Positions 14,802 to 30,076 of a stretch of 64,000 bases of DNA are shown here, piece by piece. The notes beneath the pieces were generated by a model. It did not search any database. It saw only the letters and a list, made by a program, of their open reading frames with translations, and was not told the origin of the DNA. The DNA is taken from IMG/VR virus record IMGVR_UViG_3300022602_000024, positions 290,430 to 354,429 of that record. One strand, given 5' to 3'. A program made the translations under genes and the position numbers. Position 1 is the first letter of the stretch, and each line of letters starts with the position of its first letter.

Positions 14802-14889
14802 TGGCGGAAACGGTGAGATTTGAACTCACGGAACTTTTCAAGTCGCTGGTTTTCAAAACCAGAGCCATAGACCACTCGACTACGTTTCC
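14802..14889 (-). tRNA. tRNA-Ser(UGA)
   Basis: Cloverleaf, long variable arm, TGA anticodon, encoded CCA. Confidence 0.95.
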
Positions 14890-14901
14890 AATAAATACTG
14901 C

Positions 14902-15138
14902 ATGATATCCGAAGATTTAGAGTTTGCTTATAGACTTTTGTACACACAGTTGGCCAACAAACCGTATGCGCCTGCGGCATATCATACTAATTCCAGGGAT
15001 TTTGTGCCGGACCCTATACTAACGGATCCAAAGTTCATGCTAGATGAAGATTTGGTGCAACCTCCAGGAATCGAACCTGGTTCAACGGCTCTTCAGACCG
15101 CCGCTATGACCACATCAGCTAAAGTTGCAGATAAATAA
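14902..15138 (+). CDS. possible small late gene overlapping tRNA-Phe on the antisense strand
   Basis: Preceded by TAAATA-4nt-ATG like other late genes; no recognisable homology. Confidence 0.3.
   Translation: MISEDLEFAYRLLYTQLANKPYAPAAYHTNSRDFVPDPILTDPKFMLDEDLVQPPGIEPGSTALQTAAMTTSAKVADK
15053..15128 (-). tRNA. tRNA-Phe(GAA)
   Basis: Cloverleaf, GAA anticodon, CCA. Confidence 0.95.
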
Positions 15139-15159
15139 GTTTAACTTCAAAGGATTAAT

Positions 15160-15906
15160 ATGTCTTCACCAGGAATTACAATCGGACCAGGTATTACAAT
15201 CGGCGGCGGAATAGACATCGGCGGCGGATATAACTCTTACAGCAGTGGCAACGGCAGTTTGCAGTTTTCGAATACCGGAGATGTAAAAATTACCGACAGT
15301 AATAGATTGAGTTTAAGCACAGGAAACAACTGGACCATTGAAGGTTGGTTTTATTTTAATTCTTATTCGAATCAAGACCGCTATTTTGACAAATATAACA
15401 ACAGCAACAACGAATACATATTCTGGGCCGAAACTGCTGGAACACGTTCGTTTGTTACTTATTCAGCGGGTGGCGGAACTCAAAACATGGACTGTGCATT
15501 TAACAATCCTCCACTGAACACTTGGGTTCATTTGGCCTTTGTAAGATCTGGCAGCACATTCAATGTTTATCAAAACGGCACAGTGGTTGGAACTTCTACT
15601 GGAATAGTTGGTTCTGTTAATGTCAATTCTGGATCCGCATTTGAACTGGGATATAGCGGAAGCTATAATGTCAGCAACTTTAGGATAGTGCCCGGGGTCG
15701 CAGTATATACTGGTGCATTTACGCCACCTGCTGCACCTTTAGGTGTCACTCAATCTAGTGGTACTAATATCAGTGCAATCACTTCAGGTCAAACTGCACT
15801 ATTATTGAATACTTATACTGCAACGCCTTTGTTGGATGCATCAGGTTATTATGGTAATGTACCAGTTAATGGCACAATTACCTACTCATCTGCAGCTCCA
15901 TTCTAA
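15160..15906 (+). CDS. LamG/concanavalin A-like domain protein (likely virion-associated)
   Basis: WTIEGWFY, WVHLAFVR, VYQNG, SNFRI. Confidence 0.8.
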   Translation: MSSPGITIGPGITIGGGIDIGGGYNSYSSGNGSLQFSNTGDVKITDSNRLSLSTGNNWTIEGWFYFNSYSNQDRYFDKYNNSNNEYIFWAETAGTRSFVTYSAGGGTQNMDCAFNNPPLNTWVHLAFVRSGSTFNVYQNGTVVGTSTGIVGSVNVNSGSAFELGYSGSYNVSNFRIVPGVAVYTGAFTPPAAPLGVTQSSGTNISAITSGQTALLLNTYTATPLLDASGYYGNVPVNGTITYSSAAPF

Positions 15907-15910
15907 TATT

Positions 15911-15985
15911 TGGTCTGGCCTGCAGGAATCGAACCTACATTCGTAAGGTAGAAGCCTACTGTACTATCCATTGTACTAAAGACAG
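15911..15985 (-). tRNA. tRNA-Arg(UCU)
   Basis: Cloverleaf, TCT anticodon, CCA. Confidence 0.9.
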
Positions 15986-15991
15986 AATGCG

Positions 15992-16078
15992 TGGTGCGGG
16001 ATACCAGATTTGAACTGGTACGCTTTATTAAGCGGCGGGTTTTAAGCCCGCTGGGTCTGCCGATTCCCCCAATCCCGC
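15992..16078 (-). tRNA. tRNA-Leu(UAA)
   Basis: Cloverleaf, long variable arm, TAA anticodon, CCA. Confidence 0.95.
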
Positions 16079-16098
16079 AAAAAATACTTAATTAAAAG

Positions 16099-16172
16099 TG
16101 GTGCCCCACGACAGAATCGAACTGCCATCACAGGATTACAAAACCAGTGTACTACCATTGTACTAGTAGGGC
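16099..16172 (-). tRNA. tRNA-Thr(UGU)
   Basis: Cloverleaf, TGT anticodon, two U-U pairs in the anticodon stem, CCA. Confidence 0.9.
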
Positions 16173-16173
16173 T

Positions 16174-16247
16174 TGGCAGGGGAACTAGGGATCGAACCTA
16201 GAATAGCAGAATCAAAATCTGTTGTGATACCATTTCACTATTCCCCA
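16174..16247 (-). tRNA. tRNA-Gln(UUG)
   Basis: Cloverleaf, TTG anticodon, CCA. Confidence 0.93.
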
Positions 16248-16254
16248 ACTAACC

Positions 16255-16330
16255 TGGTGGTAATAAGTAGAATCGAACTACTGACAGGCGGCGTATGAAG
16301 CCACTGCTCTACCAACTGAGTTAACGATCC
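16255..16330 (-). pseudogene. chimeric/defective tRNA with CAU anticodon
   Basis: D, anticodon and T arms pair; the acceptor stem GGATCGT/TATTACC pairs at only 2 of 7 positions. Confidence 0.75.
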
Positions 16331-16337
16331 AAATGTG

Positions 16338-16562
16338 TTAGCGAACCTTACGAATTCCTTCAAGTCCCAACTCACCATTCTGGATTTCTAGGAGTGCAGT
16401 GACTGGTGTATGAAGATGTTCAATACGATTGCTGTGTCTGTTGTTGGCACTGATCTCACGTGCTCGTGCCGCGGCAATGATAACCAAGTTAAATCGATTG
16501 CCACCTACGTTATCCACGCATCGGTTAGTGTCAATATATGTTCCACGACTGATATAACTCAT
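16338..16562 (-). CDS. rpoZ: RNA polymerase omega subunit homolog
   Basis: GNRFNLVIIAAARAREI and PVTALLEIQNG match the omega conserved regions (GNRFDLVLVAARRARQ, VIALREIEEG). Confidence 0.9.
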   Translation of the reverse strand: MSYISRGTYIDTNRCVDNVGGNRFNLVIIAAARAREISANNRHSNRIEHLHTPVTALLEIQNGELGLEGIRKVR

Positions 16563-16586
16563 AATTGCCTTTCTTTGTAAGTATGT

Positions 16587-16615
16587 ATTATAACATGTCT
16601 TTTGTTTGTTGTCAA
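16587..16615 (-). promoter_or_regulatory. consensus sigma70 promoter for rpoZ and the downstream tRNAs
   Basis: TTGACA-17nt-TATAAT with TG extension. Confidence 0.85.
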
Positions 16616-16618
16616 CTA

Positions 16619-17215
16619 TTACATTGCAGGTCCATTTCCATTTTTACGGAAATCAACTTCACCTCCTTGTGCTTTGATGAGTTTGATAGCATCCTCAAAC
16701 AAGATAGGTGCAAAGTCTGGCAACTGCTCTACACAGGCACACCAGTATCTTGGGTCAACTACCTTGGTGTTGCCCGCTTTCTTTGTCCATCCTGGCATCA
16801 TAACACGATTAGCGTGCAAGTGACCATGTATGTTGGTACCAAAGCGTCCCAATGACTCAGGGTGCAAAGGGATATGACTCAAGATCATGCCCGACATCAC
16901 ATGGTAAGCTCGCAACTCGCGAAAGTGCTCACGATAGTCTTCGTCTCGGAAAATGTCGTGATTGCCACGGATCAGGACTTTGTCTCCGTTTAAGCGATGC
17001 ATGATTTTCAATGCTCGGCGATTGATCACAACATCGCCCAAATGGTAAACTTTGTCTGTGGGCCGAACACGTTCGTTCCAAGCCCGAACCATGGCTTCGT
17101 CCATTTCTTCTGGATCCGTCCATGGGCGCAATTTTGTCACTCCGTCATCACGTGTGAATCTACATACTCCGGCATGACCGAAGTGCGTATCACTGACTAA
17201 AAATACACTAGGCAT
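16619..17215 (-). CDS. calcineurin-like metallophosphoesterase; start revised to MPSVFL
   Basis: SDTHFGH, HLGD, GNHD, SH.P, HGH.H. Confidence 0.9.
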   Translation of the reverse strand: MPSVFLVSDTHFGHAGVCRFTRDDGVTKLRPWTDPEEMDEAMVRAWNERVRPTDKVYHLGDVVINRRALKIMHRLNGDKVLIRGNHDIFRDEDYREHFRELRAYHVMSGMILSHIPLHPESLGRFGTNIHGHLHANRVMMPGWTKKAGNTKVVDPRYWCACVEQLPDFAPILFEDAIKLIKAQGGEVDFRKNGNGPAM

Positions 17216-17681
17216 ACCATATCTCCTTAAAGCCCTCTTCTTCAGTGGGCATTTCAAAACTTGCCAACATACCTTCCAATACTGCATCAGGAATTTCTTT
17301 ACCAGGTCGGCTATCTAGTCTACGTTTTAATTCAATCCTTGATGGAGTCCCAAATACCACTGCAATTGCATAGTAGTCCGGAAGCATATTGAACTTTCTT
17401 GTACGACTAGTAACTGTAGTTGATGTTTGATCCCAAATAATGTCCCGACCAGATTCACGTGCTGCAACAACTTCTTGTGCCATTAGTTCAACAGCAGTAG
17501 GCATATATTCATTGAATACTTCCGAATATGTTTTGCCTTGTGTAATAGCATAGGCCAGCACAAATTTGTCAGTGGATATATGCGTACAAGTATCTGCCCA
17601 GTCTTGGTTACTGACCCAGGTGCTTTTACCCGATCCAGGCACACCCACTAACACATAAAGTTTTGGTTGTTTTGTTTCCAT
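17208..17681 (-). CDS. P-loop kinase, polynucleotide-kinase-like (AAA_33)
   Basis: GVPGSGKST, ISTD, DQT, EEGF. Confidence 0.85.
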   Translation of the reverse strand: METKQPKLYVLVGVPGSGKSTWVSNQDWADTCTHISTDKFVLAYAITQGKTYSEVFNEYMPTAVELMAQEVVAARESGRDIIWDQTSTTVTSRTRKFNMLPDYYAIAVVFGTPSRIELKRRLDSRPGKEIPDAVLEGMLASFEMPTEEEGFKEIWYA

Positions 17682-17699
17682 ACTGTATTATACTATAAA

Positions 17700-19025
17700 T
17701 CACCGTATTTGCAAAATACGATTTTCTTTTTCCAGACAAACTGATCCTGAGTGTTGTTTTAATGCCACAATTAACGCATCACTGCGGCTTTTTAGCCACG
17801 ATAATCCATAACGTGCTATAGTGTGTTCCATGTTATAAGCATTACTGACCCACATATACACATTGCCTTGTAATGTGTTAACAAAAGTATCGACCTGTTC
17901 AGTATCATGTAGATCCAGCAGAGTATAGTCAATCGTTAACTGGCAATACTGTTGCCAAGCAGATTGAAAGTCTGCGGCAGTCATTCTAGCTGACGTTAAA
18001 AATGCTGACACTTCAGTGTCCCATGTATTCCAACTGCGCCAAGCATAAATTAAATCGGAATGTTGTTTTTGGTACTGATCAAAAACTTGCTGGTAATCAG
18101 CAAAGTTACCGTCCCAGTTAGCTACCAAATATCTTTGATAATCCAATGCAGGTTTGCTAATGTCAAATAGGCTAACTCTGGTATCAGCATCAAATCCTTG
18201 AGAATTTAATACTGCCACTGCTTTTAATCCGCCACATACACCTACATAGTGGTCAATCTTACGCGGTGTGGTTATCAGCACTGGTTCACTATTTAATACA
18301 TAAACTGTACGTAAGTCATCCGCAAACAAACCACGTATATGACCAGCATATTTTTGTAGCGGTATTACAGTGGGGTTGAATGTCCAGTCCTTAAACAACT
18401 GTTCAAGTTCCTTTTGATTGTCTGTAGGATACAAATAGACTTTTCTATTTCTAATGTTATTGTTTACATTAATTAATCGGTATCCATGTTCTAAAAATGT
18501 TCGTACTACATGGGTACCAAACTCAAATTCTCGGACTTGATATGTTTGTGTGCCCGTAGCGGGTCGAATCCAATAGGGAGTATATTCATCATGAAAGTTT
18601 TCTTTACTACGTTCTACGCAACAACTAGTAAAACGATATCCCCCAGGTACACCCGGGACTGCGCCGAACCGTGGCCGACCCACTGCTGTCCACGCCTGCA
18701 AGTTCAAACAAAAGAACTGCGGATCAATATTGTAATATCCTCTACGATCCAACAAGTGTCCCACTAATGGAGCGTTGTTATCGATGCTGTCTGAGATGAT
18801 TTCATCGTTAATACTGCCCAGGCGTAGATAGTTGCCCAATGCCGACACCACTACGAAATCTACTCCACGGTCTGCAAGCTCTATCAGTTTATCATCTAAG
18901 TGTGTGGTACTATCAAATCGCCAACCCGCTACAGGAAAGTGATAATATTGATTTAATTCTAATAAGCGTGTGTGTACCACTTCGCCAACATCAGTGTTGT
19001 CATAACACAAAAAAACTTTATTCAT
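17700..19025 (-). CDS. hypothetical protein
   Basis: 441-aa ORF coupled to the upstream gene. Confidence 0.75.
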   Translation of the reverse strand: MNKVFLCYDNTDVGEVVHTRLLELNQYYHFPVAGWRFDSTTHLDDKLIELADRGVDFVVVSALGNYLRLGSINDEIISDSIDNNAPLVGHLLDRRGYYNIDPQFFCLNLQAWTAVGRPRFGAVPGVPGGYRFTSCCVERSKENFHDEYTPYWIRPATGTQTYQVREFEFGTHVVRTFLEHGYRLINVNNNIRNRKVYLYPTDNQKELEQLFKDWTFNPTVIPLQKYAGHIRGLFADDLRTVYVLNSEPVLITTPRKIDHYVGVCGGLKAVAVLNSQGFDADTRVSLFDISKPALDYQRYLVANWDGNFADYQQVFDQYQKQHSDLIYAWRSWNTWDTEVSAFLTSARMTAADFQSAWQQYCQLTIDYTLLDLHDTEQVDTFVNTLQGNVYMWVSNAYNMEHTIARYGLSWLKSRSDALIVALKQHSGSVCLEKENRILQIR

Positions 19026-19968
19026 TGACAGTGACTCGTAGTTGATCTGCCGAAAAACTATTTCTACGATTTCGGAGCATGACCAAAAATTCTTTACCTG
19101 ATACTACTCGTCCAACAGGCATGCCGCAAATTGCCGGTGTGTATGTTACACCACCTTTGGCTAACCAATTTTGAAAATCTGTTGTTTTAACAATGTCTGA
19201 TCTTCTTAATGGCGAAATATCAATCGCTAGTTTTGCTGAGTACCCTAACATATGGGTTATGTCCCATGCTCCTGCATCATCATCTTCGTAATAAGCAATT
19301 ATATAATCTTTGCCTAGTATGCTGGTTCCTACCCATACATCATAATCGCCACTATCATCCCAATATGGATAATCTTCTTGCTCTATATTAAAAAAACATT
19401 CTTTAATAAGTCTGGTGCCATCGTTGATGTAGGTGTTGGCAATAATTTCAACTTGTTGAGCCAATTCTGAAATATTATTGGTTTTAAGATCTGTTTTAAC
19501 ATACAGTTCTGTTTTATGTACTATATCATTGATTTGATCTATCAGATACAAAAATCTATCCTGATCCGACTCCTTTAACTGAAATGTCAAAGGCACTCTA
19601 TCATTCCACACATACGGCGGACCATCATAATATGAACGATGTGCAGTAGTAAATGCTCGATGCAAGTCATTCAGATAATGCTGGGTTTCTTTGGTTCTTT
19701 TTTGCATCAGATCTACATCAACTTGATATAAAAAGTCGGTACCCATTGCATTTAATTCATTGATAGTATCAGTGAGACGTTGTATTTGCGTGTCGACAAA
19801 TCCCTGCGGAGGTGAAAGCATGATTCCGCCATAAGTCTTTGTGTAAAATATTGTCGGATAGTCCAAAAACATTTCTGTAATTTTCGAAATAAATTTGTCT
19901 GTAAAAGAATTTTTTACAACTTCGATTTGAGAAACACCCAATGGAGATTCTATTGTGATTGTTGACAT
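19018..19968 (-). CDS. hypothetical protein, paralog of the frameshifted gene at 36308-37121
   Basis: Shared motifs YLN.LH, N..VHK.E, LGK, WL...G, P.G.V. Confidence 0.75.
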   Translation of the reverse strand: MSTITIESPLGVSQIEVVKNSFTDKFISKITEMFLDYPTIFYTKTYGGIMLSPPQGFVDTQIQRLTDTINELNAMGTDFLYQVDVDLMQKRTKETQHYLNDLHRAFTTAHRSYYDGPPYVWNDRVPLTFQLKESDQDRFLYLIDQINDIVHKTELYVKTDLKTNNISELAQQVEIIANTYINDGTRLIKECFFNIEQEDYPYWDDSGDYDVWVGTSILGKDYIIAYYEDDDAGAWDITHMLGYSAKLAIDISPLRRSDIVKTTDFQNWLAKGGVTYTPAICGMPVGRVVSGKEFLVMLRNRRNSFSADQLRVTVNE

Positions 19969-19997
19969 GTTCGTATTTACTCCTATAAATACCCTAT

Positions 19998-21119
19998 ATG
20001 AACAATTATTGCCCTGACTTATTCAACACTATCTTTATACAAAAAGTCAATGAATCAGAGTCCGAGATTGGACATTGTTGTGTTAGCAAGTTGAGTGACC
20101 CAGTATCCACTATTGATTTTCAAAGTGATTTCTTAGCTACCAATCGACAACATTTTTTATCAACAGGCAATCTCCCGCCTGCTTGTGTTTACTGCACCAC
20201 TGCTGAATCCAAAGGGGAAATTTCAAGACGCACTAAACGGTCAAGACCTTATGTAGAAAACAATAACTATCCAACTGAAGTAGTGGTAGAACATTTAGAT
20301 TACAATTGCGACAATATATGTAATTTGAAATGTATAATGTGTAGCGGATACTACAGCAGTGCCTGGAGAGAAGATGAAGTAGCACTAGGTTTCAGAATAG
20401 ATTATCGTACTAAACCTACCAAACACAACACAATGATATACGATGCTGATGTGAGTAAACTCAAAAGCATTTATTTCAACGGAGGCGAACCCTTAATGAC
20501 TCGGGATCATATAAATGTGCTGAATCATGCGTTGTCTAATAGTCAAGAACCACAACATATTCGGATTAGCTATAGCAGCAACGGCACCTTTCCGATGACT
20601 GACGAGATGGCAGATTTGTGGAAACAGTTCGAAGCAGTTTACATCAACTTCAGCATTGACGCCACAGAAAAAGAATTTGAGTACATACGGTTTCCTGCAA
20701 TATGGGCTGACGTTGAAAAAAATATTGATACTTTCCGCTTGCCAAATTTGGTAACAAAAATTACTGCTACCGTAGGAGTACACAATATATTGTACTTTGA
20801 CAAATTGTACCATTGGGCAGCTAAACGCAACATAGAAATATATGTACAAGATACCAATGGTAGATCACAACTTGCAATACAAAACTTTCCCAGGGCTGGC
20901 AAAGATCGTTTGATTGCTTATCTTAATAAATTACCAGAGTCTGGCAGTAAACAATCGTTGTTGAATCTTGCACACAACATCAATAACGACGGGCATGCAC
21001 GATGGATCGAGTATCTTAACAAACTAGACCGTATGCGAGGCAACAACTGGAGAAATAGTCTAAGTAGACTGAATGAAATCAACAGGTCATGGATGTATGG
21101 AGTAAGGGGTGAGATTTGA
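19998..21119 (+). CDS. radical SAM protein with N-terminal twitch-like Cys cluster
   Basis: CNLKCIMC, NGGEP, YIRFP; paralog of 117-1247. Confidence 0.85.
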   Translation: MNNYCPDLFNTIFIQKVNESESEIGHCCVSKLSDPVSTIDFQSDFLATNRQHFLSTGNLPPACVYCTTAESKGEISRRTKRSRPYVENNNYPTEVVVEHLDYNCDNICNLKCIMCSGYYSSAWREDEVALGFRIDYRTKPTKHNTMIYDADVSKLKSIYFNGGEPLMTRDHINVLNHALSNSQEPQHIRISYSSNGTFPMTDEMADLWKQFEAVYINFSIDATEKEFEYIRFPAIWADVEKNIDTFRLPNLVTKITATVGVHNILYFDKLYHWAAKRNIEIYVQDTNGRSQLAIQNFPRAGKDRLIAYLNKLPESGSKQSLLNLAHNINNDGHARWIEYLNKLDRMRGNNWRNSLSRLNEINRSWMYGVRGEI

Positions 21120-21175
21120 ACTCACGGTTGTACTGGTTTGCAATCAGTTGCCTTGGACCACTCGGCCACCCTTAC
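21098..21175 (-). tRNA. tRNA-Cys(GCA)
   Basis: Cloverleaf, GCA anticodon, U73, CCA. Confidence 0.93.
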
Positions 21176-21176
21176 A

Positions 21177-21869
21177 TTATTTTTTTTGCCGAACTAAACG
21201 AACAGGTCCTTGAATCATACGAGAACCTGGTTGACTAACAGGATTTACTAAAGAGATATACTTGTCGTAGTATTTTTTATCCATAGTAAGATTTAATTTG
21301 TTTAAAAAACTTAAAAAGTAATCCCAATTTCTCCAGATTTGTTCAATATCAATTTCATAATCAAACAAACCCGAATTATAATATTTTCGAATGTCATTTT
21401 CAATAATACGTTTATTTTCAGCTGGGTCTCCATTGGCGGATGGTATCAGACCTGTTTTTAATATAAGGTCTTTATTGACTCTATCAAAATCCAAACTGTA
21501 CAGATATATCTTGATTTGATTTTTTTCTACTATATTTTTGTATGAACATGTTGATATCTGTTGAAAATATACACTAGGATGACAAGGTATGACAGTATTG
21601 TGATTTTGTGCCACAATATTTAAATAAGAACTCTTGATCTCTTCAATGGGCACTATAACGTTAGGACGTCTAAACGGGTGTGCTGCTTGTTTGTTAGTTG
21701 CCCATCTTGGACTATAAAATTTAACAGTATTACCGTAATCTTTACCAGATTTAGTGTCCAATCTCCAAGTTAGCTCATTGTCAGCTAGTACCATGTTATC
21801 TGCATGTTCTAATAGATTAGCGAACCCATCACCCCCGACTCCGGGTGTATAGAATATCCAATACTGCAT
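21177..21869 (-). CDS. hypothetical protein
   Basis: AT-rich ORF with a TATAAATA promoter; N-terminal PGVGGDG loop. Confidence 0.7.
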   Translation of the reverse strand: MQYWIFYTPGVGGDGFANLLEHADNMVLADNELTWRLDTKSGKDYGNTVKFYSPRWATNKQAAHPFRRPNVIVPIEEIKSSYLNIVAQNHNTVIPCHPSVYFQQISTCSYKNIVEKNQIKIYLYSLDFDRVNKDLILKTGLIPSANGDPAENKRIIENDIRKYYNSGLFDYEIDIEQIWRNWDYFLSFLNKLNLTMDKKYYDKYISLVNPVSQPGSRMIQGPVRLVRQKK

Positions 21870-21883
21870 AAAGATTATTTATA

Positions 21884-21971
21884 TGGCGGAGCATGTAGGA
21901 ATCGAACCTACTCACCCATTGCTGAATGACAGATTAGCAATCTGTTGCCTTAACCGGTCGGCCAATGCTCC
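21884..21971 (-). tRNA. tRNA-Ser(GCU)
   Basis: Cloverleaf, long variable arm, GCT anticodon, CCA. Confidence 0.95.
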
Positions 21972-21974
21972 AAT

Positions 21975-22553
21975 TTAGATCAGATTTAACTCTGTTAATT
22001 CTTTGCGTTTCCATACAAGTAATGGTTCAGTGAACTGCTCCCATTTACATCTATCTAACGCGGTTTCGTATCCTTTAATCTCTAAATATGATTCAAGTTC
22101 TTCTACCCAGAAATCCGGAACGTAAAAACTTATCTTACCGTCAAGATTAAGATACTGAAATCTTTTTGTATTTCTTTTCCATTCATAATGATTAGCATCT
22201 AACCACTTGGCCACAACAAGTTCCCATGTGCCATCTAAAAACACTTCGCCAGCAGTGGGTGAAATATATTTAAACTTCTTACATCTACCTGCCTTTGGCA
22301 TCCAACCCGATTCGTATCTTGCGATAATTCGTTTTCTCTGCGTTTCTTTAAACTCGTCAGAATGTTTTACGGGCGCTTTAGTTAAATTATGCAGATTTCC
22401 TGCATTACTTCTATTTCTTGATTTAAAGACCCCTCGTTTAATAGCCATTCGTATAGCCCCGGGAGATACTCCGTAAGTGGCATATAGCTGACTATGAGAC
22501 ATGCCTTTGTCATACTCTGACTGAATAAATTCCCAATTGTATTTTGCTTTCAT
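21975..22553 (-). CDS. free-standing PD-(D/E)XK endonuclease with an N-terminal HTH-like region (putative homing endonuclease); start revised to MKAKY
   Basis: GTWE, YVPDF, YLEIKG motifs; KHSDEFKE NUMOD-like segment; flanked by a 9-bp direct repeat. Confidence 0.75.
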   Translation of the reverse strand: MKAKYNWEFIQSEYDKGMSHSQLYATYGVSPGAIRMAIKRGVFKSRNRSNAGNLHNLTKAPVKHSDEFKETQRKRIIARYESGWMPKAGRCKKFKYISPTAGEVFLDGTWELVVAKWLDANHYEWKRNTKRFQYLNLDGKISFYVPDFWVEELESYLEIKGYETALDRCKWEQFTEPLLVWKRKELTELNLI

Positions 22554-22615
22554 ACAATTATTTAGCATTTTTGCGTTAATCTGCTCCAATACCATTATGG
22601 GACCATTCCTAATTG

Positions 22616-22689
22616 TGGAGCGGGATAGCGGAATCGAACCGCTGACTTGAACTTGGAAGGATCTCGTTTTACCATTAAACTAATCCCGC
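22616..22689 (-). tRNA. tRNA-Gly(UCC)
   Basis: Cloverleaf, TCC anticodon, CCA. Confidence 0.92.
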
Positions 22690-22695
22690 ATTTCC

Positions 22696-22769
22696 TGGCG
22701 TCCCCCTAGAGACTCGAACTCCAACGAACGGTTTTGGAGACCGCTATGCAGCCATTACATCAGGGAGAC
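22696..22769 (-). tRNA. tRNA-Trp(CCA)
   Basis: Cloverleaf, CCA anticodon, CCA end. Confidence 0.93.
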
Positions 22770-22776
22770 AATAACT

Positions 22777-22850
22777 TGGAGCGGGTAGAGAGAATCGAAC
22801 TCTCACACAATCCTTGGCAAGGACCGAGGCTACCTTTACATCATACCCGC
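22777..22850 (-). tRNA. tRNA-Gly(GCC)
   Basis: Cloverleaf, GCC anticodon, CCA. Confidence 0.92.
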
Positions 22851-22861
22851 AACTAAAAACA

Positions 22862-22936
22862 TGGCTCCCCAGGGTGGGTTCGAACCACCGACCAACGGAT
22901 TAACAGTCCGCTACTCTACCGCTGAGCTACTAGGGA
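22862..22936 (-). tRNA. tRNA-Asn(GUU)
   Basis: Cloverleaf, GTT anticodon, CCA. Confidence 0.96.
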
Positions 22937-22975
22937 ATACGTCTATTATACTATCTTTTTTATTCTGCGTCAAGT

Positions 22976-24523
22976 TCAACGCTTTATATTAAATAAAGGA
23001 CCAAACCAGGCCGCATCTAAGATTTTTTTGTTTACCCCTTTACCGATTAACCAATTATAATAGGTATTAATAAGATCCACCGCATCAGATTTTAATAAAC
23101 TACGATGAATTCCGAATACTAATATATCCGTGTCGCCATAATCTAATGTTTCAGGACTAAAAAAATAATGATATAACTTGGCATCAAAATGCCTCCCATG
23201 TAAAGTGTGCCATACTGTTGTAGGGACTTCTGGTATAATATCTTCATTTTCAGTCAGGGCATATATGCTGTATATCATAAATTCGCTAGGGGTATGCCTG
23301 TCATTTTCATCAGTAGGTTTATTCCAATCAATCAATTGAGTTATGTCGTTTTCTCTTAGTATACGACGAGCCAATGATGTTTTTATAACAAAAGGAGTCA
23401 TTGGAATAGGCAATTTGTCTGGTATTGTTAACCCAAGATCGTTGCATTTTTCCTGTAGCCATCTTAATGCCCAAAAGTTTGTTGTTACTTCTACGTTAGT
23501 GCTGTTTCCGTGACCCACTGGCCAGCTAGATAACTTTGTTGGCTTAAAAAATAAATTTTTACTATCTAATAGAAGATATTTGCTATTAGGTATTTGATCT
23601 GCTATTTGCAGTTTGATTTGTTGGTGCCTTATATAGCCATATTCATCTGGAGTTGACTGATTATAATCATGTATTAATTTTAATTGATGTCTAGAATGGT
23701 GCGGTAACAATAAGGTAAGCCACTCAGCATATGATGTATCATTGTCTTCAATCACAACATAATGCACACAAGTATCTACTACAAATAAATCAATTGTGTG
23801 TGCCAATAGTTGCATGGCAAATTTATCTCTAGTACAGGTAACAGTTACGATGACTAGGTCGTGCGTTTCAGTTTCTGATGCAACTCCCAAACTGATGCCC
23901 GAATGTACTGGTATTACTTTATCTCTGAAATAATGTATTAATATCGGAATCGAGTCGGTATCAGATGTAATACCAAACTGGTCGTTCTGATTGGTTTTAA
24001 CTATTTCAGAAAGTATTCTTACTCCAGATTTCTTAGATCGTTCAACTATTGCAACAAGATTTTTGCATAATACATGGTAGTCGCCTTCAAGTACATCATT
24101 GTCAATGTTGTAAACATCAGTTAATGCAGCTTTGATAATCTCGTGCCCAGGTACAGACCCTATAAATCCCTGAAACATAAGAAATGTATCTTCAGATTTT
24201 ACTGTAAAAAAATCATATTTTTCTACCAAGTAGTTTATATCTTTTACTAATACTGCATCAGCATCAATATAAACTCCCCCGCGGACATATAAAAAATAGT
24301 ATCGAAAAAGATCGGCCTTGTGTGGGCCTGACTGTATACTGAGAAATTTTTCTTCTATTAACGGAAAATCGTCTGCAGGATATTCTTTAAAAAAATCCAA
24401 TATATCATCATCTGTAAAAAATTGGTATTGCCAATCGTCACCAGTGAAATATTTGAGTTTGTCTATTACATATTGCGGAGGTTTTTTATTTTTAGTTGTT
24501 TGTACAAGTATTTTTGGAATCAT
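22976..24523 (-). CDS. two-domain glycosyltransferase: GT32/OCH1-like DXD domain plus a second GT-A-like domain
   Basis: MIPKIL.QT, KADLFRY..LY..GGVYIDAD; second half has QQIKL and LLLDSK. Confidence 0.8.
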   Translation of the reverse strand: MIPKILVQTTKNKKPPQYVIDKLKYFTGDDWQYQFFTDDDILDFFKEYPADDFPLIEEKFLSIQSGPHKADLFRYYFLYVRGGVYIDADAVLVKDINYLVEKYDFFTVKSEDTFLMFQGFIGSVPGHEIIKAALTDVYNIDNDVLEGDYHVLCKNLVAIVERSKKSGVRILSEIVKTNQNDQFGITSDTDSIPILIHYFRDKVIPVHSGISLGVASETETHDLVIVTVTCTRDKFAMQLLAHTIDLFVVDTCVHYVVIEDNDTSYAEWLTLLLPHHSRHQLKLIHDYNQSTPDEYGYIRHQQIKLQIADQIPNSKYLLLDSKNLFFKPTKLSSWPVGHGNSTNVEVTTNFWALRWLQEKCNDLGLTIPDKLPIPMTPFVIKTSLARRILRENDITQLIDWNKPTDENDRHTPSEFMIYSIYALTENEDIIPEVPTTVWHTLHGRHFDAKLYHYFFSPETLDYGDTDILVFGIHRSLLKSDAVDLINTYYNWLIGKGVNKKILDAAWFGPLFNIKR

Positions 24524-24553
24524 ATCATATTATGAGTTACTGTACATTATTTA

Positions 24554-24628
24554 TGGTGGAGGATAGCGGGTTCGAACCGCTGACTCAAGCGTGCAAGGCT
24601 AGTGTTTTCCCAATTAGACTAATCCCCC
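24554..24628 (-). tRNA. tRNA-Ala(UGC)
   Basis: Cloverleaf, TGC anticodon, G3-U70, CCA. Confidence 0.94.
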
Positions 24629-24641
24629 CATTTTGGGTTAT

Positions 24642-25583
24642 TCAAAGTTCTGCTACAAGATTTTGAATAATTTTTTTGCAAGGAAGAACTTCGGTTACTT
24701 TATCAATGGAATGCCCGGCATATATATGTCCTTGATCCGTATCTTCTTTCCAAAGTCCGTACTTTAAACTTTCAGTATGATTTACATTATCAGTGCCTTG
24801 AAACTCTTTGAACTTCAAAGCAGTTTGTTTCCTTACTACTTCTGTGTCTCCGTTACGGCGAAACGTGTGGTTAAACTCAGAAAGGTCTTCCTTCTTGGCA
24901 TTTATTACTGCCAACTTGGTTGCTTGCTTGATTGGGCTTTCTGCAGACAATGCCAGAAGAGTGCCAACTGCAACTATTTCTGCTCCAAGATCAATATATT
25001 CTTTAACTTGTTCCGGCGTCCCAACACCGCCATATGGTACTAAATATGCATCCGGGGTTAATTCTTTTTGTGCAAGGAATAACTCTTTAACTGGTGTATA
25101 TCCAGAAAATCCAGCCGATTCAAGGCCTTTGATGCAAAATCCATCAATGAAATGTTTATCAGCAGTTGCTTTGTCCATTGGCTCGTAGATTCTTCTAAAT
25201 ATCTTTACCCCTGCTTCGTGTATTGGTTGCAACCATTCAATGACTGTAGCATCAGGTATATCGTCTTTTGCTGGGGCACTATTAGAGTTACCATAGACAA
25301 TTTCCATGGTAGGAAATGCATTTTTAATAACTATGTCCCGGCAGGCTTTGGCACTGTAGATAGAACGTATTTCAAAGTTACAATGTAATCTATTAGATTT
25401 AGTAAACTTCATGAACATGTCAATGTCTTTTTGCAGTTGGTCGAAGTTGGTGCCGTACGCCCATGAACTTAGACTAGCGTAGCCGCCGGCTCGGTGAACT
25501 GCTATAGCCAGCTGTAGACTGGAACCTTGGTTCATACATGCTTCAAGGATAGGATGTTGAGATTTGAATATTTGTTGTGCCAT
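24642..25583 (-). CDS. nitronate monooxygenase/FabK-like FMN TIM-barrel protein; start revised to MAQQIF
   Basis: HPILEACM, LAIAVHRAGG, GLESAG, YGGVG, GA..VAVGT..SAES; the longer ORF-track start runs through tRNA-fMet. Confidence 0.8.
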   Translation of the reverse strand: MAQQIFKSQHPILEACMNQGSSLQLAIAVHRAGGYASLSSWAYGTNFDQLQKDIDMFMKFTKSNRLHCNFEIRSIYSAKACRDIVIKNAFPTMEIVYGNSNSAPAKDDIPDATVIEWLQPIHEAGVKIFRRIYEPMDKATADKHFIDGFCIKGLESAGFSGYTPVKELFLAQKELTPDAYLVPYGGVGTPEQVKEYIDLGAEIVAVGTLLALSAESPIKQATKLAVINAKKEDLSEFNHTFRRNGDTEVVRKQTALKFKEFQGTDNVNHTESLKYGLWKEDTDQGHIYAGHSIDKVTEVLPCKKIIQNLVAEL

Positions 25584-25630
25584 ACTGATATTTATTTGAA
25601 TAGATCCATGGCAAAAATTACCTATCGGGT

Positions 25631-25705
25631 TGGTTGCAGAGGACGGAATCGCACCGCCGATCTTCAGGTTATGAGCCTGACGAGATACTACTTCTCCACT
25701 CTGCG
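25631..25705 (-). tRNA. initiator tRNA-fMet(CAU)
   Basis: C1-A72 mismatch, CAT anticodon, CCA. Confidence 0.9.
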
Positions 25706-25709
25706 ATAA

Positions 25710-25786
25710 TGGTCCGTGTGACACGATTTGAACATGCGACCACCTGGTCCCAAACCAGGAGCTCTACCAGGCTGAGCTACACACGG
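25710..25786 (-). tRNA. tRNA-Pro(UGG)
   Basis: Cloverleaf, TGG anticodon, CCA. Confidence 0.95.
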
Positions 25787-25793
25787 AAAAAAC

Positions 25794-25878
25794 TGGTGCC
25801 CTAGGTCGGACTCGAACCGACACGCCTTTCGGCAACGGCTTCTAAAACCGTCAAGTCTACCAATTTCATCACCAGGGC
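25794..25878 (-). tRNA. tRNA-Leu(UAG)
   Basis: Cloverleaf, long variable arm, TAG anticodon, CCA. Confidence 0.95.
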
Positions 25879-25900
25879 AATACTTTACTTATACTTTGCG

Positions 25901-25975
25901 TGGGGTGTCGTACGAGAATCGAACTCGTGATAGCGGAATCACAACCCGCGGTTTTGCCACTAAACTAACGTCACC
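25901..25975 (-). tRNA. tRNA-His(GUG)
   Basis: G-1:C73, GTG anticodon, CCA. Confidence 0.94.
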
Positions 25976-25991
25976 ATTTAATTATTAATAG

Positions 25992-26621
25992 TTATTTGAC
26001 TATTACAAATGTTGTAAAACACCAATTGGCATTGGCGATGTATACTTCTGAAAATCCAATGCTTTGGAATTTTTTAGTATACCAATCTACAGATTCTGGA
26101 AACATGACTCCTACCAAGGAATCTGCTTTTTCTTTGATTTCTTTTCTGCTGACACCATGTTTGAATTTGTATTCATGATACTGCTCTAGTGCCAAACCTG
26201 AATTTTCTGTCTTTTCTGACAATATCAAAAAAGCACCAGGCAACATTGCATTATATACACTTGTCAAATAAGATTCTTTATCTTGTATAAAATGCAAAGT
26301 CCAATTACACAATACTGCTGAAAATTTTACCGCAGTGTCAGGAAACTCACTAGTGCAATAATATGTGGCATAGTTGGGCGGGCATTTTGCCAGCATGTCT
26401 TGACTATTATCCACTGCATGTATATTAGCGAAACCAGCAGAGTGTAATCTGTTAACAGTCTCACCAATGGCACACCCAATTTCCAATATGGGATCAGAGT
26501 GTTGTAACTTTTGTTTACAAAAATCAACTGACAACTCTAACACACGATCGTAATCGGGTATATGTTGCCTTGCATGTTGATTAAACAACTCTGCTATGGT
26601 GTTGTTGAATTTCCATTCCAT
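25992..26621 (-). CDS. CmoA-like SAM-dependent enzyme
   Basis: W.F...A..F...IPDY, EIGCAIG, VDNS..M, NWTLHF, LILSEK, K...G.S..EI..K collinear with CmoA. Confidence 0.85.
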   Translation of the reverse strand: MEWKFNNTIAELFNQHARQHIPDYDRVLELSVDFCKQKLQHSDPILEIGCAIGETVNRLHSAGFANIHAVDNSQDMLAKCPPNYATYYCTSEFPDTAVKFSAVLCNWTLHFIQDKESYLTSVYNAMLPGAFLILSEKTENSGLALEQYHEYKFKHGVSRKEIKEKADSLVGVMFPESVDWYTKKFQSIGFSEVYIANANWCFTTFVIVK

Positions 26622-27436
26622 ATGATTACATTTTCTTGAGTTAAATCCTGGCTGATCGGTTGAGGAAAGAATTTTGCCATATATCTATTATGATTTTTAA
26701 TATCATAGTAATACGGTAATTCTGTTTCTGCTTGACTGTATAAACTATCATCATATCCAAAATTATTTTGTTTCATCAACAAGATCAATGCAGATAAACT
26801 TACAATACTTGCAGTAATACGTATGCTGCCTTTTTCAGACACACCTTGCATACGAATACGTTCGCTAGGTTGTATAATACTTAAAGTTTTGCTCACTGCC
26901 GATCTTTGTTCATCTGTGGCATTGGGAAATAATCTCCGATACCCATTGAATGGATGTACTGTGTCAATGATAATTGTTTCTTTGGCTAATCCAGCTATTT
27001 TGCGTACAAAATCAAAACTATCAAATACTGCATACAGCATGCCACTGGCAATTACAATGTCAAAATGTTGATCGCTTGTGTAATCAGCAAAACTTGATTG
27101 GACAATATTGTATTGCCCAGGATCATAATACTTTTTGAATAGTTGTTCGCTGGGCAATGAATAACGTTCTAGTTGTTCTATCCCAGTGTAATGGCGAGCA
27201 CCATTTGCCAAACACCATGCACCGGTTGCTCCCATACAGCTACCTATATCCAGTACTGTTTTATCTTTAATCAAATCTGGCGGCAACATAACACGATGCC
27301 TATTGAACATAAATTCTGGATTTATGTTGTAACTAAGACTTGGCCCAGATTTGCCTGGACTAGGTACTATTACTTTCCTACCTATTCTATCATCAGTTAA
27401 AACCCAATCTGGTTGTGTTTCAAAAATGTTTATCAT
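26594..27436 (-). CDS. class I methyltransferase, CmoB-like motifs
   Basis: KTVLDIGS..G, GA...TGIE, FDIVIASGMLY. Confidence 0.65.
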   Translation of the reverse strand: MINIFETQPDWVLTDDRIGRKVIVPSPGKSGPSLSYNINPEFMFNRHRVMLPPDLIKDKTVLDIGSCMGATGAWCLANGARHYTGIEQLERYSLPSEQLFKKYYDPGQYNIVQSSFADYTSDQHFDIVIASGMLYAVFDSFDFVRKIAGLAKETIIIDTVHPFNGYRRLFPNATDEQRSAVSKTLSIIQPSERIRMQGVSEKGSIRITASIVSLSALILLMKQNNFGYDDSLYSQAETELPYYYDIKNHNRYMAKFFPQPISQDLTQENVIIWNGNSTTP

Positions 27437-27477
27437 AATCTATTTATAGAACAATTTTATTAGAAATTATTTAATAT

Positions 27478-27608
27478 ACCATATAGAAACACACTCGGCC
27501 ACGCTCTGAACCTGGACTCTTAGTAATGTGTTTTTATGTGGTGGACGCCTAGATACTATCAACGCCCTGGGATTGTTAGCTACCACAGGACCGAGCCTGA
27601 ACAATCTC
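27478..27608 (-). ncRNA. structured intergenic RNA(s), including an Ala-type microhelix ending in ACCA
   Basis: GATTGTT/AACAATC stem, GGGCGTT..GGCGTCC-ACCA, then an 18-nt imperfect inverted repeat. Confidence 0.45.
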
Positions 27609-27619
27609 TTTACTAAACT

Positions 27620-27706
27620 TGGTGGATGAGGTTGGACTTGAACCAACAATGCCATTACGACGGAAGATTTACAGTCTCCTGGGGTTACCAATTTTCCTAC
27701 ACATCC
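27620..27706 (-). tRNA. tRNA-Tyr(GUA)
   Basis: Cloverleaf, long variable arm, GTA anticodon, CCA. Confidence 0.94.
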
Positions 27707-27716
27707 ATAACTAACT

Positions 27717-27792
27717 TGGTACATCGTACGAGATTCGAACTCGTGTACCCGCCGTGAAAGGGCGGTGTCCTAGGCCTCTAGACGAACGATGC
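27717..27792 (-). tRNA. tRNA-Glu(UUC)
   Basis: Cloverleaf, TTC anticodon, CCA. Confidence 0.96.
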
Positions 27793-27797
27793 ATATT

Positions 27798-27925
27798 TGG
27801 CGCTCTACAGGATTCTCACCTGCTCACTGAAGACCCCTATAGCGGGGTTTTTATCTCTCTACTGCCATGAGTTGCGAACTCACCGTAGAACCCGAGTTGC
27901 GAACTCGGCGTGGAAATATCAGAGC
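27798..27925 (-). ncRNA. tRNA-like ncRNA (128 nt) with a T-arm and GCCA end but a non-tRNA interior
   Basis: GCTCT/AGAGC acceptor-like stem, GCAGG-TGAGAAT-CCTGT arm, two GAGTTCGCAACTC hairpins. Confidence 0.7.
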
Positions 27926-27932
27926 ATAAACT

Positions 27933-28007
27933 TGGCGGTCCCAAGGAGAATCGAACTCCTATCAACGGCGTGACAAGCCGCTATACTAACCATTATACTA
28001 TGAGACC
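27933..28007 (-). tRNA. tRNA-Asp(GUC)
   Basis: Cloverleaf, GTC anticodon, CCA. Confidence 0.95.
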
Positions 28008-28410: not shown

Positions 28411-28432
28411 ATACGGTGTTGTTTTTATGCAA

Positions 28433-28541
28433 CTGTATCTTAAAGCATATTGGTGTCATACACATATTCAATATGTGTATTGCCCCGTCAAGGTTTATCA
28501 ATCCTCCGGCTTTGTTTCGTCCAATATGCTTTAAGATACAG
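28433..28541 (-). ncRNA. unassigned structured RNA with a perfect 21-bp closing stem
   Basis: CTGTATCTTAAAGCATATTGG inverted repeat enclosing two hairpins. Confidence 0.55.
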
Positions 28542-28678
28542 AGTGTTGCCACTCTGCAGATAGGATCGTGTCCTACCCAGGAGTCTTAGTAACTGGTTAC
28601 CGCCCAGCTTTCATGTATCCTGTCCGCCCGTTCGTGCTTTTTTAAGTGAGCACAGGACCTCGTTCCCTGTAACACTTT
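28539..28678 (-). ncRNA. unassigned multi-hairpin GC-rich RNA
   Basis: CCTGT/ACAGG, CTGG/CCAG, GTAGGA/TCCTAT and CAGAGTG-GCAA-CACTCTG stems. Confidence 0.5.
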
Positions 28679-28682
28679 AGTA

Positions 28683-28844
28683 TTAACGTTTGTGCGTATC
28701 TAACTTTCTAGCCATTTCAGCCAAGGCTCGTAGATGAGCTTCTGCACGTTGTACCTTATCTTCCATCAACTTCATTCTCTGCTCTGGTGTTAAAATCAAA
28801 CCAGGAACAAATTGTTGATGAGTTTGCTTTTGTTCTAACATCAT
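28683..28844 (-). CDS. small helical protein (53 aa, MMLEQKQTHQQFVPG...), first gene after the attenuator; not in ORF track
   Basis: Manual translation; AAGGA RBS. Confidence 0.65.
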   Translation of the reverse strand: MMLEQKQTHQQFVPGLILTPEQRMKLMEDKVQRAEAHLRALAEMARKLDTHKR

Positions 28845-28856
28845 TGCTTCCTTAAA

Positions 28857-28890
28857 GTAAAAAGCCCCGGAGTTTTTAGTTCCAGGGCCT
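28857..28890 (-). terminator. attenuator terminator
   Basis: AGGCCCTGGA-9nt-TCCGGGGCTT followed by a U tract. Confidence 0.75.
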
Positions 28891-28916
28891 TAGTTAATAT
28901 ACTTGTGTGAAATATG

Positions 28917-29039
28917 TTAACTGAGACCCCCAACTGGTTCACGGTCACTATTAATCTGTGCATCAAACATAGACCAATAGGCTGACCCGCCTAAGGCTAG
29001 CGTTTGGGGTTTGCATGAATGATTAATAGTGTGCGTCAT
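28917..29039 (-). CDS. putative attenuation leader peptide (40 aa, all 20 amino acids): MTHTINHSCKPQTLALGGSAYWSMFDAQINSDREPVGGLS
   Basis: Manual translation; starts 9 nt after a sigma70 -10 box; its 3' end overlaps the antiterminator arm. Confidence 0.75.
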   Translation of the reverse strand: MTHTINHSCKPQTLALGGSAYWSMFDAQINSDREPVGGLS

Positions 29040-29048
29040 AATAAATCT

Positions 29049-29077
29049 ATTGTAGTTTATTTATCATTGAGTGTCAA
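29049..29077 (-). promoter_or_regulatory. sigma70-type promoter of the leader
   Basis: TTGACA-17nt-TACAAT, with a TAAATA in the spacer. Confidence 0.8.
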
Positions 29078-29087
29078 TAGTGTTTGG

Positions 29088-29216
29088 TTAAATGACTTCG
29101 TATTCGTCTTTACCGCAACCACATTCGGGACACAAAAAGTCCTCGGCTAGATCTTCCCATTTGCCTTCTAAGATTTCATCGTGGACATGTCCACAAACTA
29201 CGCATACGTGATCCAT
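29088..29216 (-). CDS. rubredoxin (42 aa); not in ORF track
   Basis: MDHVCVVCGHV...WEDLAEDFLCPECGCGK; TAATG coupling to rubrerythrin. Confidence 0.92.
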   Translation of the reverse strand: MDHVCVVCGHVHDEILEGKWEDLAEDFLCPECGCGKDEYEVI

Positions 29217-29665
29217 TATAGTGCCTCCAATTTTGCTTGATATGCTTCAGCATGACGCTTTTCAATTTTGGCCAATGCTGCAAAACGCTTTTCTGCTTTG
29301 GCTAGAATAGCCGCAAATTGTTCTGCGTGCTCTTTGCTTTCGGCGATTTGCTCGGCGGCTTCGTAAGCCGCTGCAGTATTGCCTTCATCTTCAGCTTGTG
29401 CTTTGAATTCAGGATACATTGTAGTGAATTCATAAACTTCGCCTTCAATGGCTTTTTGCAAACATTCAGCAGTACTGGGCTTGCCAATCAGCAATTCTAA
29501 ATGCCCCCAAGCGTGTAACAACTCTTGATTAGCAGTATGCTCAAAATGTTGTGCAATATCTTCGTGACCCTCTTCTCGGGCAATTTTTGCAAAATAACGG
29601 TATTTTGTGTGAGCCTGTGACTCGCCAGCAAATGCCGCTTCTAAGTTTTTAATAGTAATGCTCAT
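29216..29665 (-). CDS. rubrerythrin
   Basis: NLEAAFAGESQA, E..H, EGE.YE...MYP.F, E..H di-iron motifs. Confidence 0.95.
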   Translation of the reverse strand: MSITIKNLEAAFAGESQAHTKYRYFAKIAREEGHEDIAQHFEHTANQELLHAWGHLELLIGKPSTAECLQKAIEGEVYEFTTMYPEFKAQAEDEGNTAAAYEAAEQIAESKEHAEQFAAILAKAEKRFAALAKIEKRHAEAYQAKLEAL

Positions 29666-29961: not shown

Positions 29962-30038
<77 letters not shown>

Positions 30039-30047
30039 AAGTTTTAT

Positions 30048-30076
30048 ATTATACTAGAAGTTGAATACTTTGTCAA
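30048..30076 (-). promoter_or_regulatory. consensus sigma70 promoter
   Basis: TTGACA-17nt-TATAAT just upstream of the tRNA. Confidence 0.8.

Follow-up and report, generated by a model that had tools for sequence, protein, structure and literature searches.

A candidate pan-amino-acid attenuator at the head of a jumbo-phage tRNA cluster

Why would a phage place a 40-codon ORF that uses all 20 amino acids, and that ends inside an RNA hairpin, at the head of its tRNA genes? The question arose in a 64,000-nucleotide stretch of DNA (the window; positions 290,430 to 354,429 of IMG/VR record IMGVR_UViG_3300022602_000024), part of a 354-kb contig of a jumbo myovirus with a T4-type large terminase. 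A sequence-only reading had proposed that the ORF is the leader of a ribosome-coupled attenuator, in which stalling at any codon before the stop codon allows read-through into the downstream ncRNAs and tRNAs. We examined the locus, collected its relatives and asked whether the leader composition and the hairpins are conserved.

Anatomy of the leader and its hairpins

All elements described by the sequence-only reading are present on the minus strand, and its observation is correct in every detail. The promoter has 11 of 12 consensus matches, and its −10 box ends 9 nt before the ATG. With this spacing the transcript should start 0–3 nt before the AUG, and the mRNA is therefore essentially leaderless and has no Shine-Dalgarno sequence. 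The ORF reaches 19 kinds of amino acid at codon 35 and all 20 at codon 36. The intrinsic terminator downstream was missed by a consensus scan only because the loop limit of that scan is 8. The alternative helix claimed by the sequence-only reading is real, with 15 of 17 positions pairing (two C·A mismatches, two G·U). When the 3′ terminator arm (arm C) is withheld, as before it is transcribed, the minimum-energy fold is one long hairpin in which the G-rich last codons (arm A) pair with the 5′ terminator arm (arm B), GGGGUCU with AGGCCCU, and the stop codon sits in the upper stem. This fold scores −21.2 kcal/mol, against −25.0 kcal/mol for the terminator conformer, which is thus thermodynamically favoured. 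The U-run is followed after 14 nt by ORF53, then by about 670 nt without ORFs that contain a conserved structured ncRNA, and then by the tRNAs.

Table 1. Features of the locus, in window coordinates
Feature	Position	Strand	Description
Sigma-70-type promoter	29049..29077	−	TTGACA (29077-29072), 17 nt, TACAAT (29054-29049)
Leader ORF	28917..29039	−	ATG at 29039; 40 codons plus TAA; all 20 amino acids; 32 different codons
Long hairpin in the ORF body	28941..29036	−	Includes an 11-bp perfect stem between codons 3-6 and 29-32; possibly an RNA polymerase pause or timing hairpin (inferred)
Arm A	28923..28934	−	G-rich segment GUUGGGGGUCUC in codons 36-39; pairs with the terminator's 5′ arm
Apical part of the antiterminator hairpin	28892..28922	−	Holds the last sense codon and the stop codon (28919-28917)
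Intrinsic terminator	28859..28891	−	11-bp stem; 5′ arm B 28891-28881, 9-nt loop 28880-28872, 3′ arm C 28871-28861, U-run to 28859; −16.9 kcal/mol
ORF53	28683..28844	−	53 codons; conserved small protein with a Shine-Dalgarno sequence
Structured ncRNA	28430..28670	−	P1 loop AACGAGG at 28664-28658; invariant AACGGGCGG at 28632-28624; outer coordinates approximate
tRNA array	14802..28007	−	Co-oriented; 20 tRNAs in this stretch, starting with Asp, Glu and Tyr at 28007-27620, interspersed with protein genes

Within the window alone, the 20-amino-acid property is not significant. Three of 140 ATG-ORFs of 36–60 codons are also complete, 1 of 43 ORFs of 38–42 codons is complete and that one is this ORF, and a random 40-mer of this phage's composition is complete with P = 0.0066. 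Chance is adequate for the single window, and the case rests on relatives.

Conservation of completeness and of the RNA switch

No cultured phage shares the locus. DNA and protein searches with the leader, terminator, ORF53 and ncRNA gave nothing usable, and the closest cultured relatives by large terminase are PA5oct-like Pseudomonas jumbo phages at 54% identity. The flanking rubrerythrin and rubredoxin genes have 420 relatives in IMG/VR, but the DNA that follows them is mosaic, and only two close variants (loci L005 and L006) kept the leader. Between the window and L006 the ORF shows 5 replacements and 2 synonymous changes, yet stays complete. A distant syntenic locus, L037, revealed a conserved RNA motif just after ORF53, consisting of AACGAGG, a hairpin and then AACGGGCGG. 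This motif is independent of the leader's content and was used as the search key. Of 95 loci with the family-type ncRNA and enough upstream DNA, 88 have a small ORF whose stop lies 8–35 nt (the search criterion) before a strong intrinsic terminator. A second scan with a stricter pattern gave a hold-out set of 44 new loci, all 44 of which have the module, for a total of 132 of 139 uncultured jumbo-phage loci. A scan of bacterial genomes with the ncRNA motif gave no host clue, as the first 120 hits all look like chance matches in unrelated, mostly high-GC genomes.

The 120 distinct leader peptides (78 plus 42, typically about 40–50 residues) are highly divergent, with a mean column identity of 20%. 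Nevertheless, 70 contain all 20 amino acids and 22 contain 19, whereas about 1 complete peptide in 40 is expected by chance; the remaining 28 (about 23%) have 18 or fewer kinds. Among 40 representatives below 60% identity, 20 are complete, compared to expectations of 0.6 with proteome composition, 1.1 with the family's own pooled composition and 3.1 with a uniform composition, and none of 20,000 simulations reached the observed number. The effect is specific to the reading frame. In frame 0, 36 of 63 are complete, against 0–2 of 63 in each of the other five frames, with mean kinds of 19.2 against 16.5–17.4, a control that holds both base composition and phylogeny constant. Rare residues occur exactly once, Cys in 84% of leaders, Trp in 87% and His in 76%. 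In 44 representative leaders, Cys is single-copy in 38 at 16 different alignment columns and His is single-copy in 32 at 15 columns, indicating that selection keeps the residue present rather than keeping a site. Of 36 complete leaders, 29 are already complete upstream of arm A, although some unique residues (Asp, Arg, Glu, Pro) sit within four codons of arm A, where a stalled ribosome might already mask it. The loci are phylogenetically related, so the P values here and below overstate independence.

The RNA switch is conserved and co-varies. In 64 of 67 members, folding the transcript up to arm B pairs arm B with a G-rich segment in the last 1–9 codons. Because arm A was not in register between subfamilies in MAFFT alignments, pair counting was replaced by a cognate versus non-cognate duplex test and an anchor-based gapless helix count. 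Cognate A:B duplexes average −14.4 kcal/mol, against −12.0 for non-cognate partners from other family members (permutation SD 0.29, P < 1e-4), −7.4 for shuffled arm A and −5.6 for a control window further upstream; the terminator itself averages −16.9 kcal/mol. The hold-out set repeats the duplex result (−13.9 against −5.7 kcal/mol). The helix anchored on the GGG:CCC core has a 7-bp core that is 72–100% canonical, with AU/GC/GU/CG exchanges at one position and CG/UA at two others. Overall, 0.78 of positions are canonical, against 0.19–0.57 when the partner is slid by 1–3 nt and 0.69 ± 0.01 when partners are permuted among sequences (0 of 2,000 reach the observed value). The GGGU(C/U) core of arm A falls in all three codon phases (14, 23 and 8 cases), and is therefore an RNA constraint and not a peptide constraint. 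The terminator stem is conserved in 63 aligned relatives, as is the loop A(C/U)UAAA(A/C)AC. RNAalifold on one subfamily recovered only the terminator.

Leader length varies from 27 to 58 codons and the position of arm A relative to the stop codon varies by about 20 nt, with a median span of −20 to −9 nt. However, the stop codon always lies between arms A and B and is 13–31 nt before the terminator stem in every member. In 27 of 63 relatives the −10 box ends 6–10 nt before the ATG, and these leaders have no Shine-Dalgarno sequence and depend on leaderless initiation, while another 25 have a 5′ UTR of 12–67 nt.

The downstream tRNA operon and its match to the leader

The first cargo of the proposed switch is a small ORF and a conserved ncRNA. 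There is no room for a promoter between the U-run and ORF53, so ORF53 can be transcribed only by read-through. In 18 of 78 leaders ORF53 is absent and the terminator abuts the ncRNA directly. The ncRNA is a genuine structured RNA, with many compensatory changes in both P1, which has the invariant AACGAGG loop, and P2. Every locus with enough downstream DNA continues into a co-oriented tRNA array, reaching 26 tRNAs within 6 kb and 34 in locus L324, with none on the opposite strand. In 9 of 60 loci, a strong sigma-70-like promoter lies between the ncRNA motif and the first tRNA.

Leader composition also tracks the phage's own tRNA repertoire, which the sequence-only reading did not foresee. Loci L324 and L330 have complete leaders and arrays covering all 20 amino acids. 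The leader of L341 lacks C, D, F and Y, and its 18-tRNA array lacks all four; that of L360 lacks only F, and its 22-tRNA array lacks only F and L. Over 51 loci, 37 of 46 cases of a missing amino acid coincide with a missing tRNA, compared to 17.1 ± 3.5 expected when leaders are permuted freely and 23.8 ± 3.0 when they are permuted within array-size classes (P = 0.0002). Within-locus hypergeometric tests agree (z = 3.2–3.4 in the first set and 3.8 in the hold-out set). Arrays are truncated by the length of DNA retrieved, and leaders also contain amino acids for which the retrieved part of the array has no tRNA. Short leaders (27–35 codons, 14–18 kinds) go with small arrays of 4–8 tRNAs. At the codon level no tuning was found, as leader codons match phage anticodons no better than long phage ORFs do (65% against 66%).

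A proposed attenuator and its alternatives

The comparative tests that the sequence-only reading called for all passed, and they support its interpretation. We propose, with moderate confidence and without experimental data, that this is a ribosome-coupled transcription attenuator at the head of the phage's ncRNA and tRNA operon. In this model, host RNA polymerase starts at the promoter and a ribosome loads on the (nearly) leaderless AUG. Arms A and B are made before arm C and, left alone, form the antiterminator, so that transcription reads through into ORF53, the ncRNA and the tRNAs. If instead the ribosome has decoded the whole leader in time, it would unwind or cover arm A, B would pair with C, and transcription would stop. 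A shortage of any one charged tRNA would therefore delay the ribosome and switch the operon on, and it would be shut off once decoding is fast again, a feedback loop on the phage's own tRNA supply. Translation of the leader, the polarity, the timing and the trigger (tRNA cleavage or starvation) are inferred. The ORF body is unusually structured (z = −3.9 against shuffles for the window's leader, mean z = −2.6 for 55 relatives) and could pause RNA polymerase to set up a race between about 40 codons and about 75 nt, which is speculation. In the computed folds it shares no nucleotides with arm A, and RNAalifold on one subfamily recovered no consensus helix there, so an untranslated leader may be ON.

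The main rival, though an unlikely one, has the same parts with the opposite polarity, as in pyrBI and pyrE attenuation, where the signal is UTP-dependent polymerase pausing. A ribosome that keeps pace and parks at the stop codon would prevent the terminator from folding, so that fast translation gives read-through. In E. coli, a ribosome at the stop codon partly represses a terminator when the spacer is under about 27 nt (PMC4824070), and the spacers here are 13–31 nt. However, this model leaves unexplained the conserved, co-varying A:B helix, which would give read-through precisely when the ribosome lags. The G+C-rich core of the terminator stem also usually begins 21 nt or more after the stop codon, and shutting off tRNA supply when decoding is slow has no obvious benefit.

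Equally doubtful is an attenuator that senses overall ribosome availability or translation initiation, for example free 70S ribosomes acting on a leaderless mRNA, with the even composition being secondary. The nearly leaderless members, the lack of codon-level tuning and a predicted default state of read-through without translation are consistent with this. It does not explain single-copy Cys and His kept at changing positions, completeness far above even a uniform-composition null or missing amino acids coinciding with missing tRNAs, and 25 of 63 members have ordinary 5′ UTRs.

A functional micro-protein whose gene ends at a leaky terminator, the hairpins being ordinary 3′-end structure, is less likely still. 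The ORF is conserved and has one invariant Trp column and the DRTPE and KQAG motifs, and one subfamily has been annotated as 'hypothetical protein'; the window's ORF has never been called as a gene in a collection of about 15 billion proteins. Apart from the initiator Met and the Trp column, however, no columns are conserved, replacements outnumber synonymous changes between the window and L006, selection acts on presence and not position, the C-terminal residues follow an RNA motif that shifts reading frame, and Pfam and PHROGs searches gave no function for the leader ORF or ORF53. A purely RNA-level element with an incidental ORF, suggested by the structured leader RNA and some strongly conserved synonymous sites, is the least likely, as completeness is specific to one reading frame, the ORF is kept in 132 of 139 loci, with a start next to the promoter or a purine-rich stretch, and Rfam has no match.

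Leader-peptide attenuation is itself classical. The trp- and his-type leaders likewise appear to combine a short translated ORF, a terminator and an antiterminator whose 5′ strand lies at the end of the ORF, but they carry runs of one to three cognate amino acids and control biosynthetic enzymes, whereas this leader has no such runs and about one codon for each of the 20. Attenuators upstream of antibiotic-resistance genes such as bmrCD, vmlR and lmo0919 also seem to sense impaired elongation, but in response to drugs, often through specific arrest peptides. T-box riboswitches couple tRNA charging to read-through by binding one specific uncharged tRNA, probably without a ribosome or an ORF. 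Searches with the Rfam leader families (His_leader, Trp_leader, Leu_leader, Thr_leader and others) and T-box gave no hit in the window at gathering thresholds, at E ≤ 5 around the locus or at E ≤ 1 in nine related loci, and the ncRNA has no Rfam match. Full-text literature searches found no description of such an element. The pan-amino-acid leader, its viral setting, its cargo and its match to the tRNA repertoire appear to be new.

In the most far-reaching form of this model, which we consider about as likely as not, uncultured jumbo phages carry a translation homeostat. The leader peptide would list the amino acids whose tRNAs the phage can supply, in most cases all 20, and would turn on the tRNA operon and a new structured ncRNA whenever any one of them is decoded slowly, for example after host tRNA decay or cleavage by an anticodon nuclease. 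This would be the first pan-amino-acid attenuator and the first known regulatory logic for phage tRNA arrays. It would also provide a compact genetic part of about 230 nt that reports shortage of any aminoacyl-tRNA, and it flags a widespread, uncharacterised structured RNA as the first cargo of the switch. Why phages carry tRNA genes has been debated for some fifty years, with codon compensation, host tRNA decay and escape from anticodon nucleases as competing hypotheses. If the element works as proposed, the phage measures decoding capacity for every amino acid and adjusts its own tRNA output, which makes these hypotheses directly testable, and leader-peptide attenuation, known for single amino acids, would extend to a general, composition-encoded sensor.

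Structured RNA and small protein downstream of the attenuator

The attenuator is followed by a conserved multi-stem ncRNA, which is also found in more than 130 loci, including L037, a distant syntenic locus, and the related locus L119. P1 has an invariant AACGAGG loop, P2 is a hairpin, and these are followed by an invariant AACGGGCGG and then by further stems, while a long stem holds a variable insert that in some loci carries a T-arm-like GGUUCGAAUCC. P1 and P2 show compensatory changes. The ncRNA has no match in Rfam and always heads a tRNA array. ORF53, a conserved small protein of about 50 residues with the motif LTPEQ..LI..K.ERA, is the first gene after the terminator in about 80% of loci and is absent in the rest. 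It has no Pfam or PHROG function.

Coordinates of features in the window and in two related loci
Feature	Sequence	Positions	Strand
Conserved ncRNA	Window	28430-28670	minus
Conserved ncRNA	L037	6224-6420	
Conserved ncRNA	L119	1272-1450	
ORF53	Window	28683-28844	minus
Terminator loop	Window	28872-28880	minus
Leader promoter spacer	Window	29055-29071	minus
Rubrerythrin and rubredoxin gene pair	Window	29088-29665	minus
Perfect-consensus promoter and lone tRNA-Met	Window	29962-30076	minus
Part of tRNA array with interspersed enzyme genes	Window	21975-27436	minus

Terminator loop, leader promoter and upstream region

The terminator loop sequence A(C/U)UAAA(A/C)AC is conserved across subfamilies whose stems differ, which suggests that the loop has a role beyond closing the hairpin. 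Leader promoters share an ATAAATAA-like element in the spacer between the −35 and −10 boxes, and in 27 of 63 loci the −10 box ends 6-10 nt before the ATG, giving a leaderless mRNA. The rubrerythrin and rubredoxin gene pair is conserved at 75-100% identity in the 80 loci kept of 420 IMG/VR matches, whereas the DNA immediately after it is highly mosaic, consisting of tRNA-Met, unrelated genes, or this leader. Upstream of the rubrerythrin genes, a perfect-consensus promoter (TTGACA, 17 nt, TATAAT, 12 of 12) directly precedes a lone tRNA-Met.

Leader length and the tRNA array

One clade (loci L097, L117, L145, L155, L176, L180, L185, L353 and L371) has short leaders of 27-35 codons with 14-18 kinds of amino acid. 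This goes with small tRNA arrays of 4-8 genes, typically including Tyr, Glu, Cys, Trp and Gly. In the window, the tRNA array is interspersed with several SAM-dependent methyltransferase genes and a glycosyltransferase gene, identified by Pfam hits, and these might modify tRNA or DNA.
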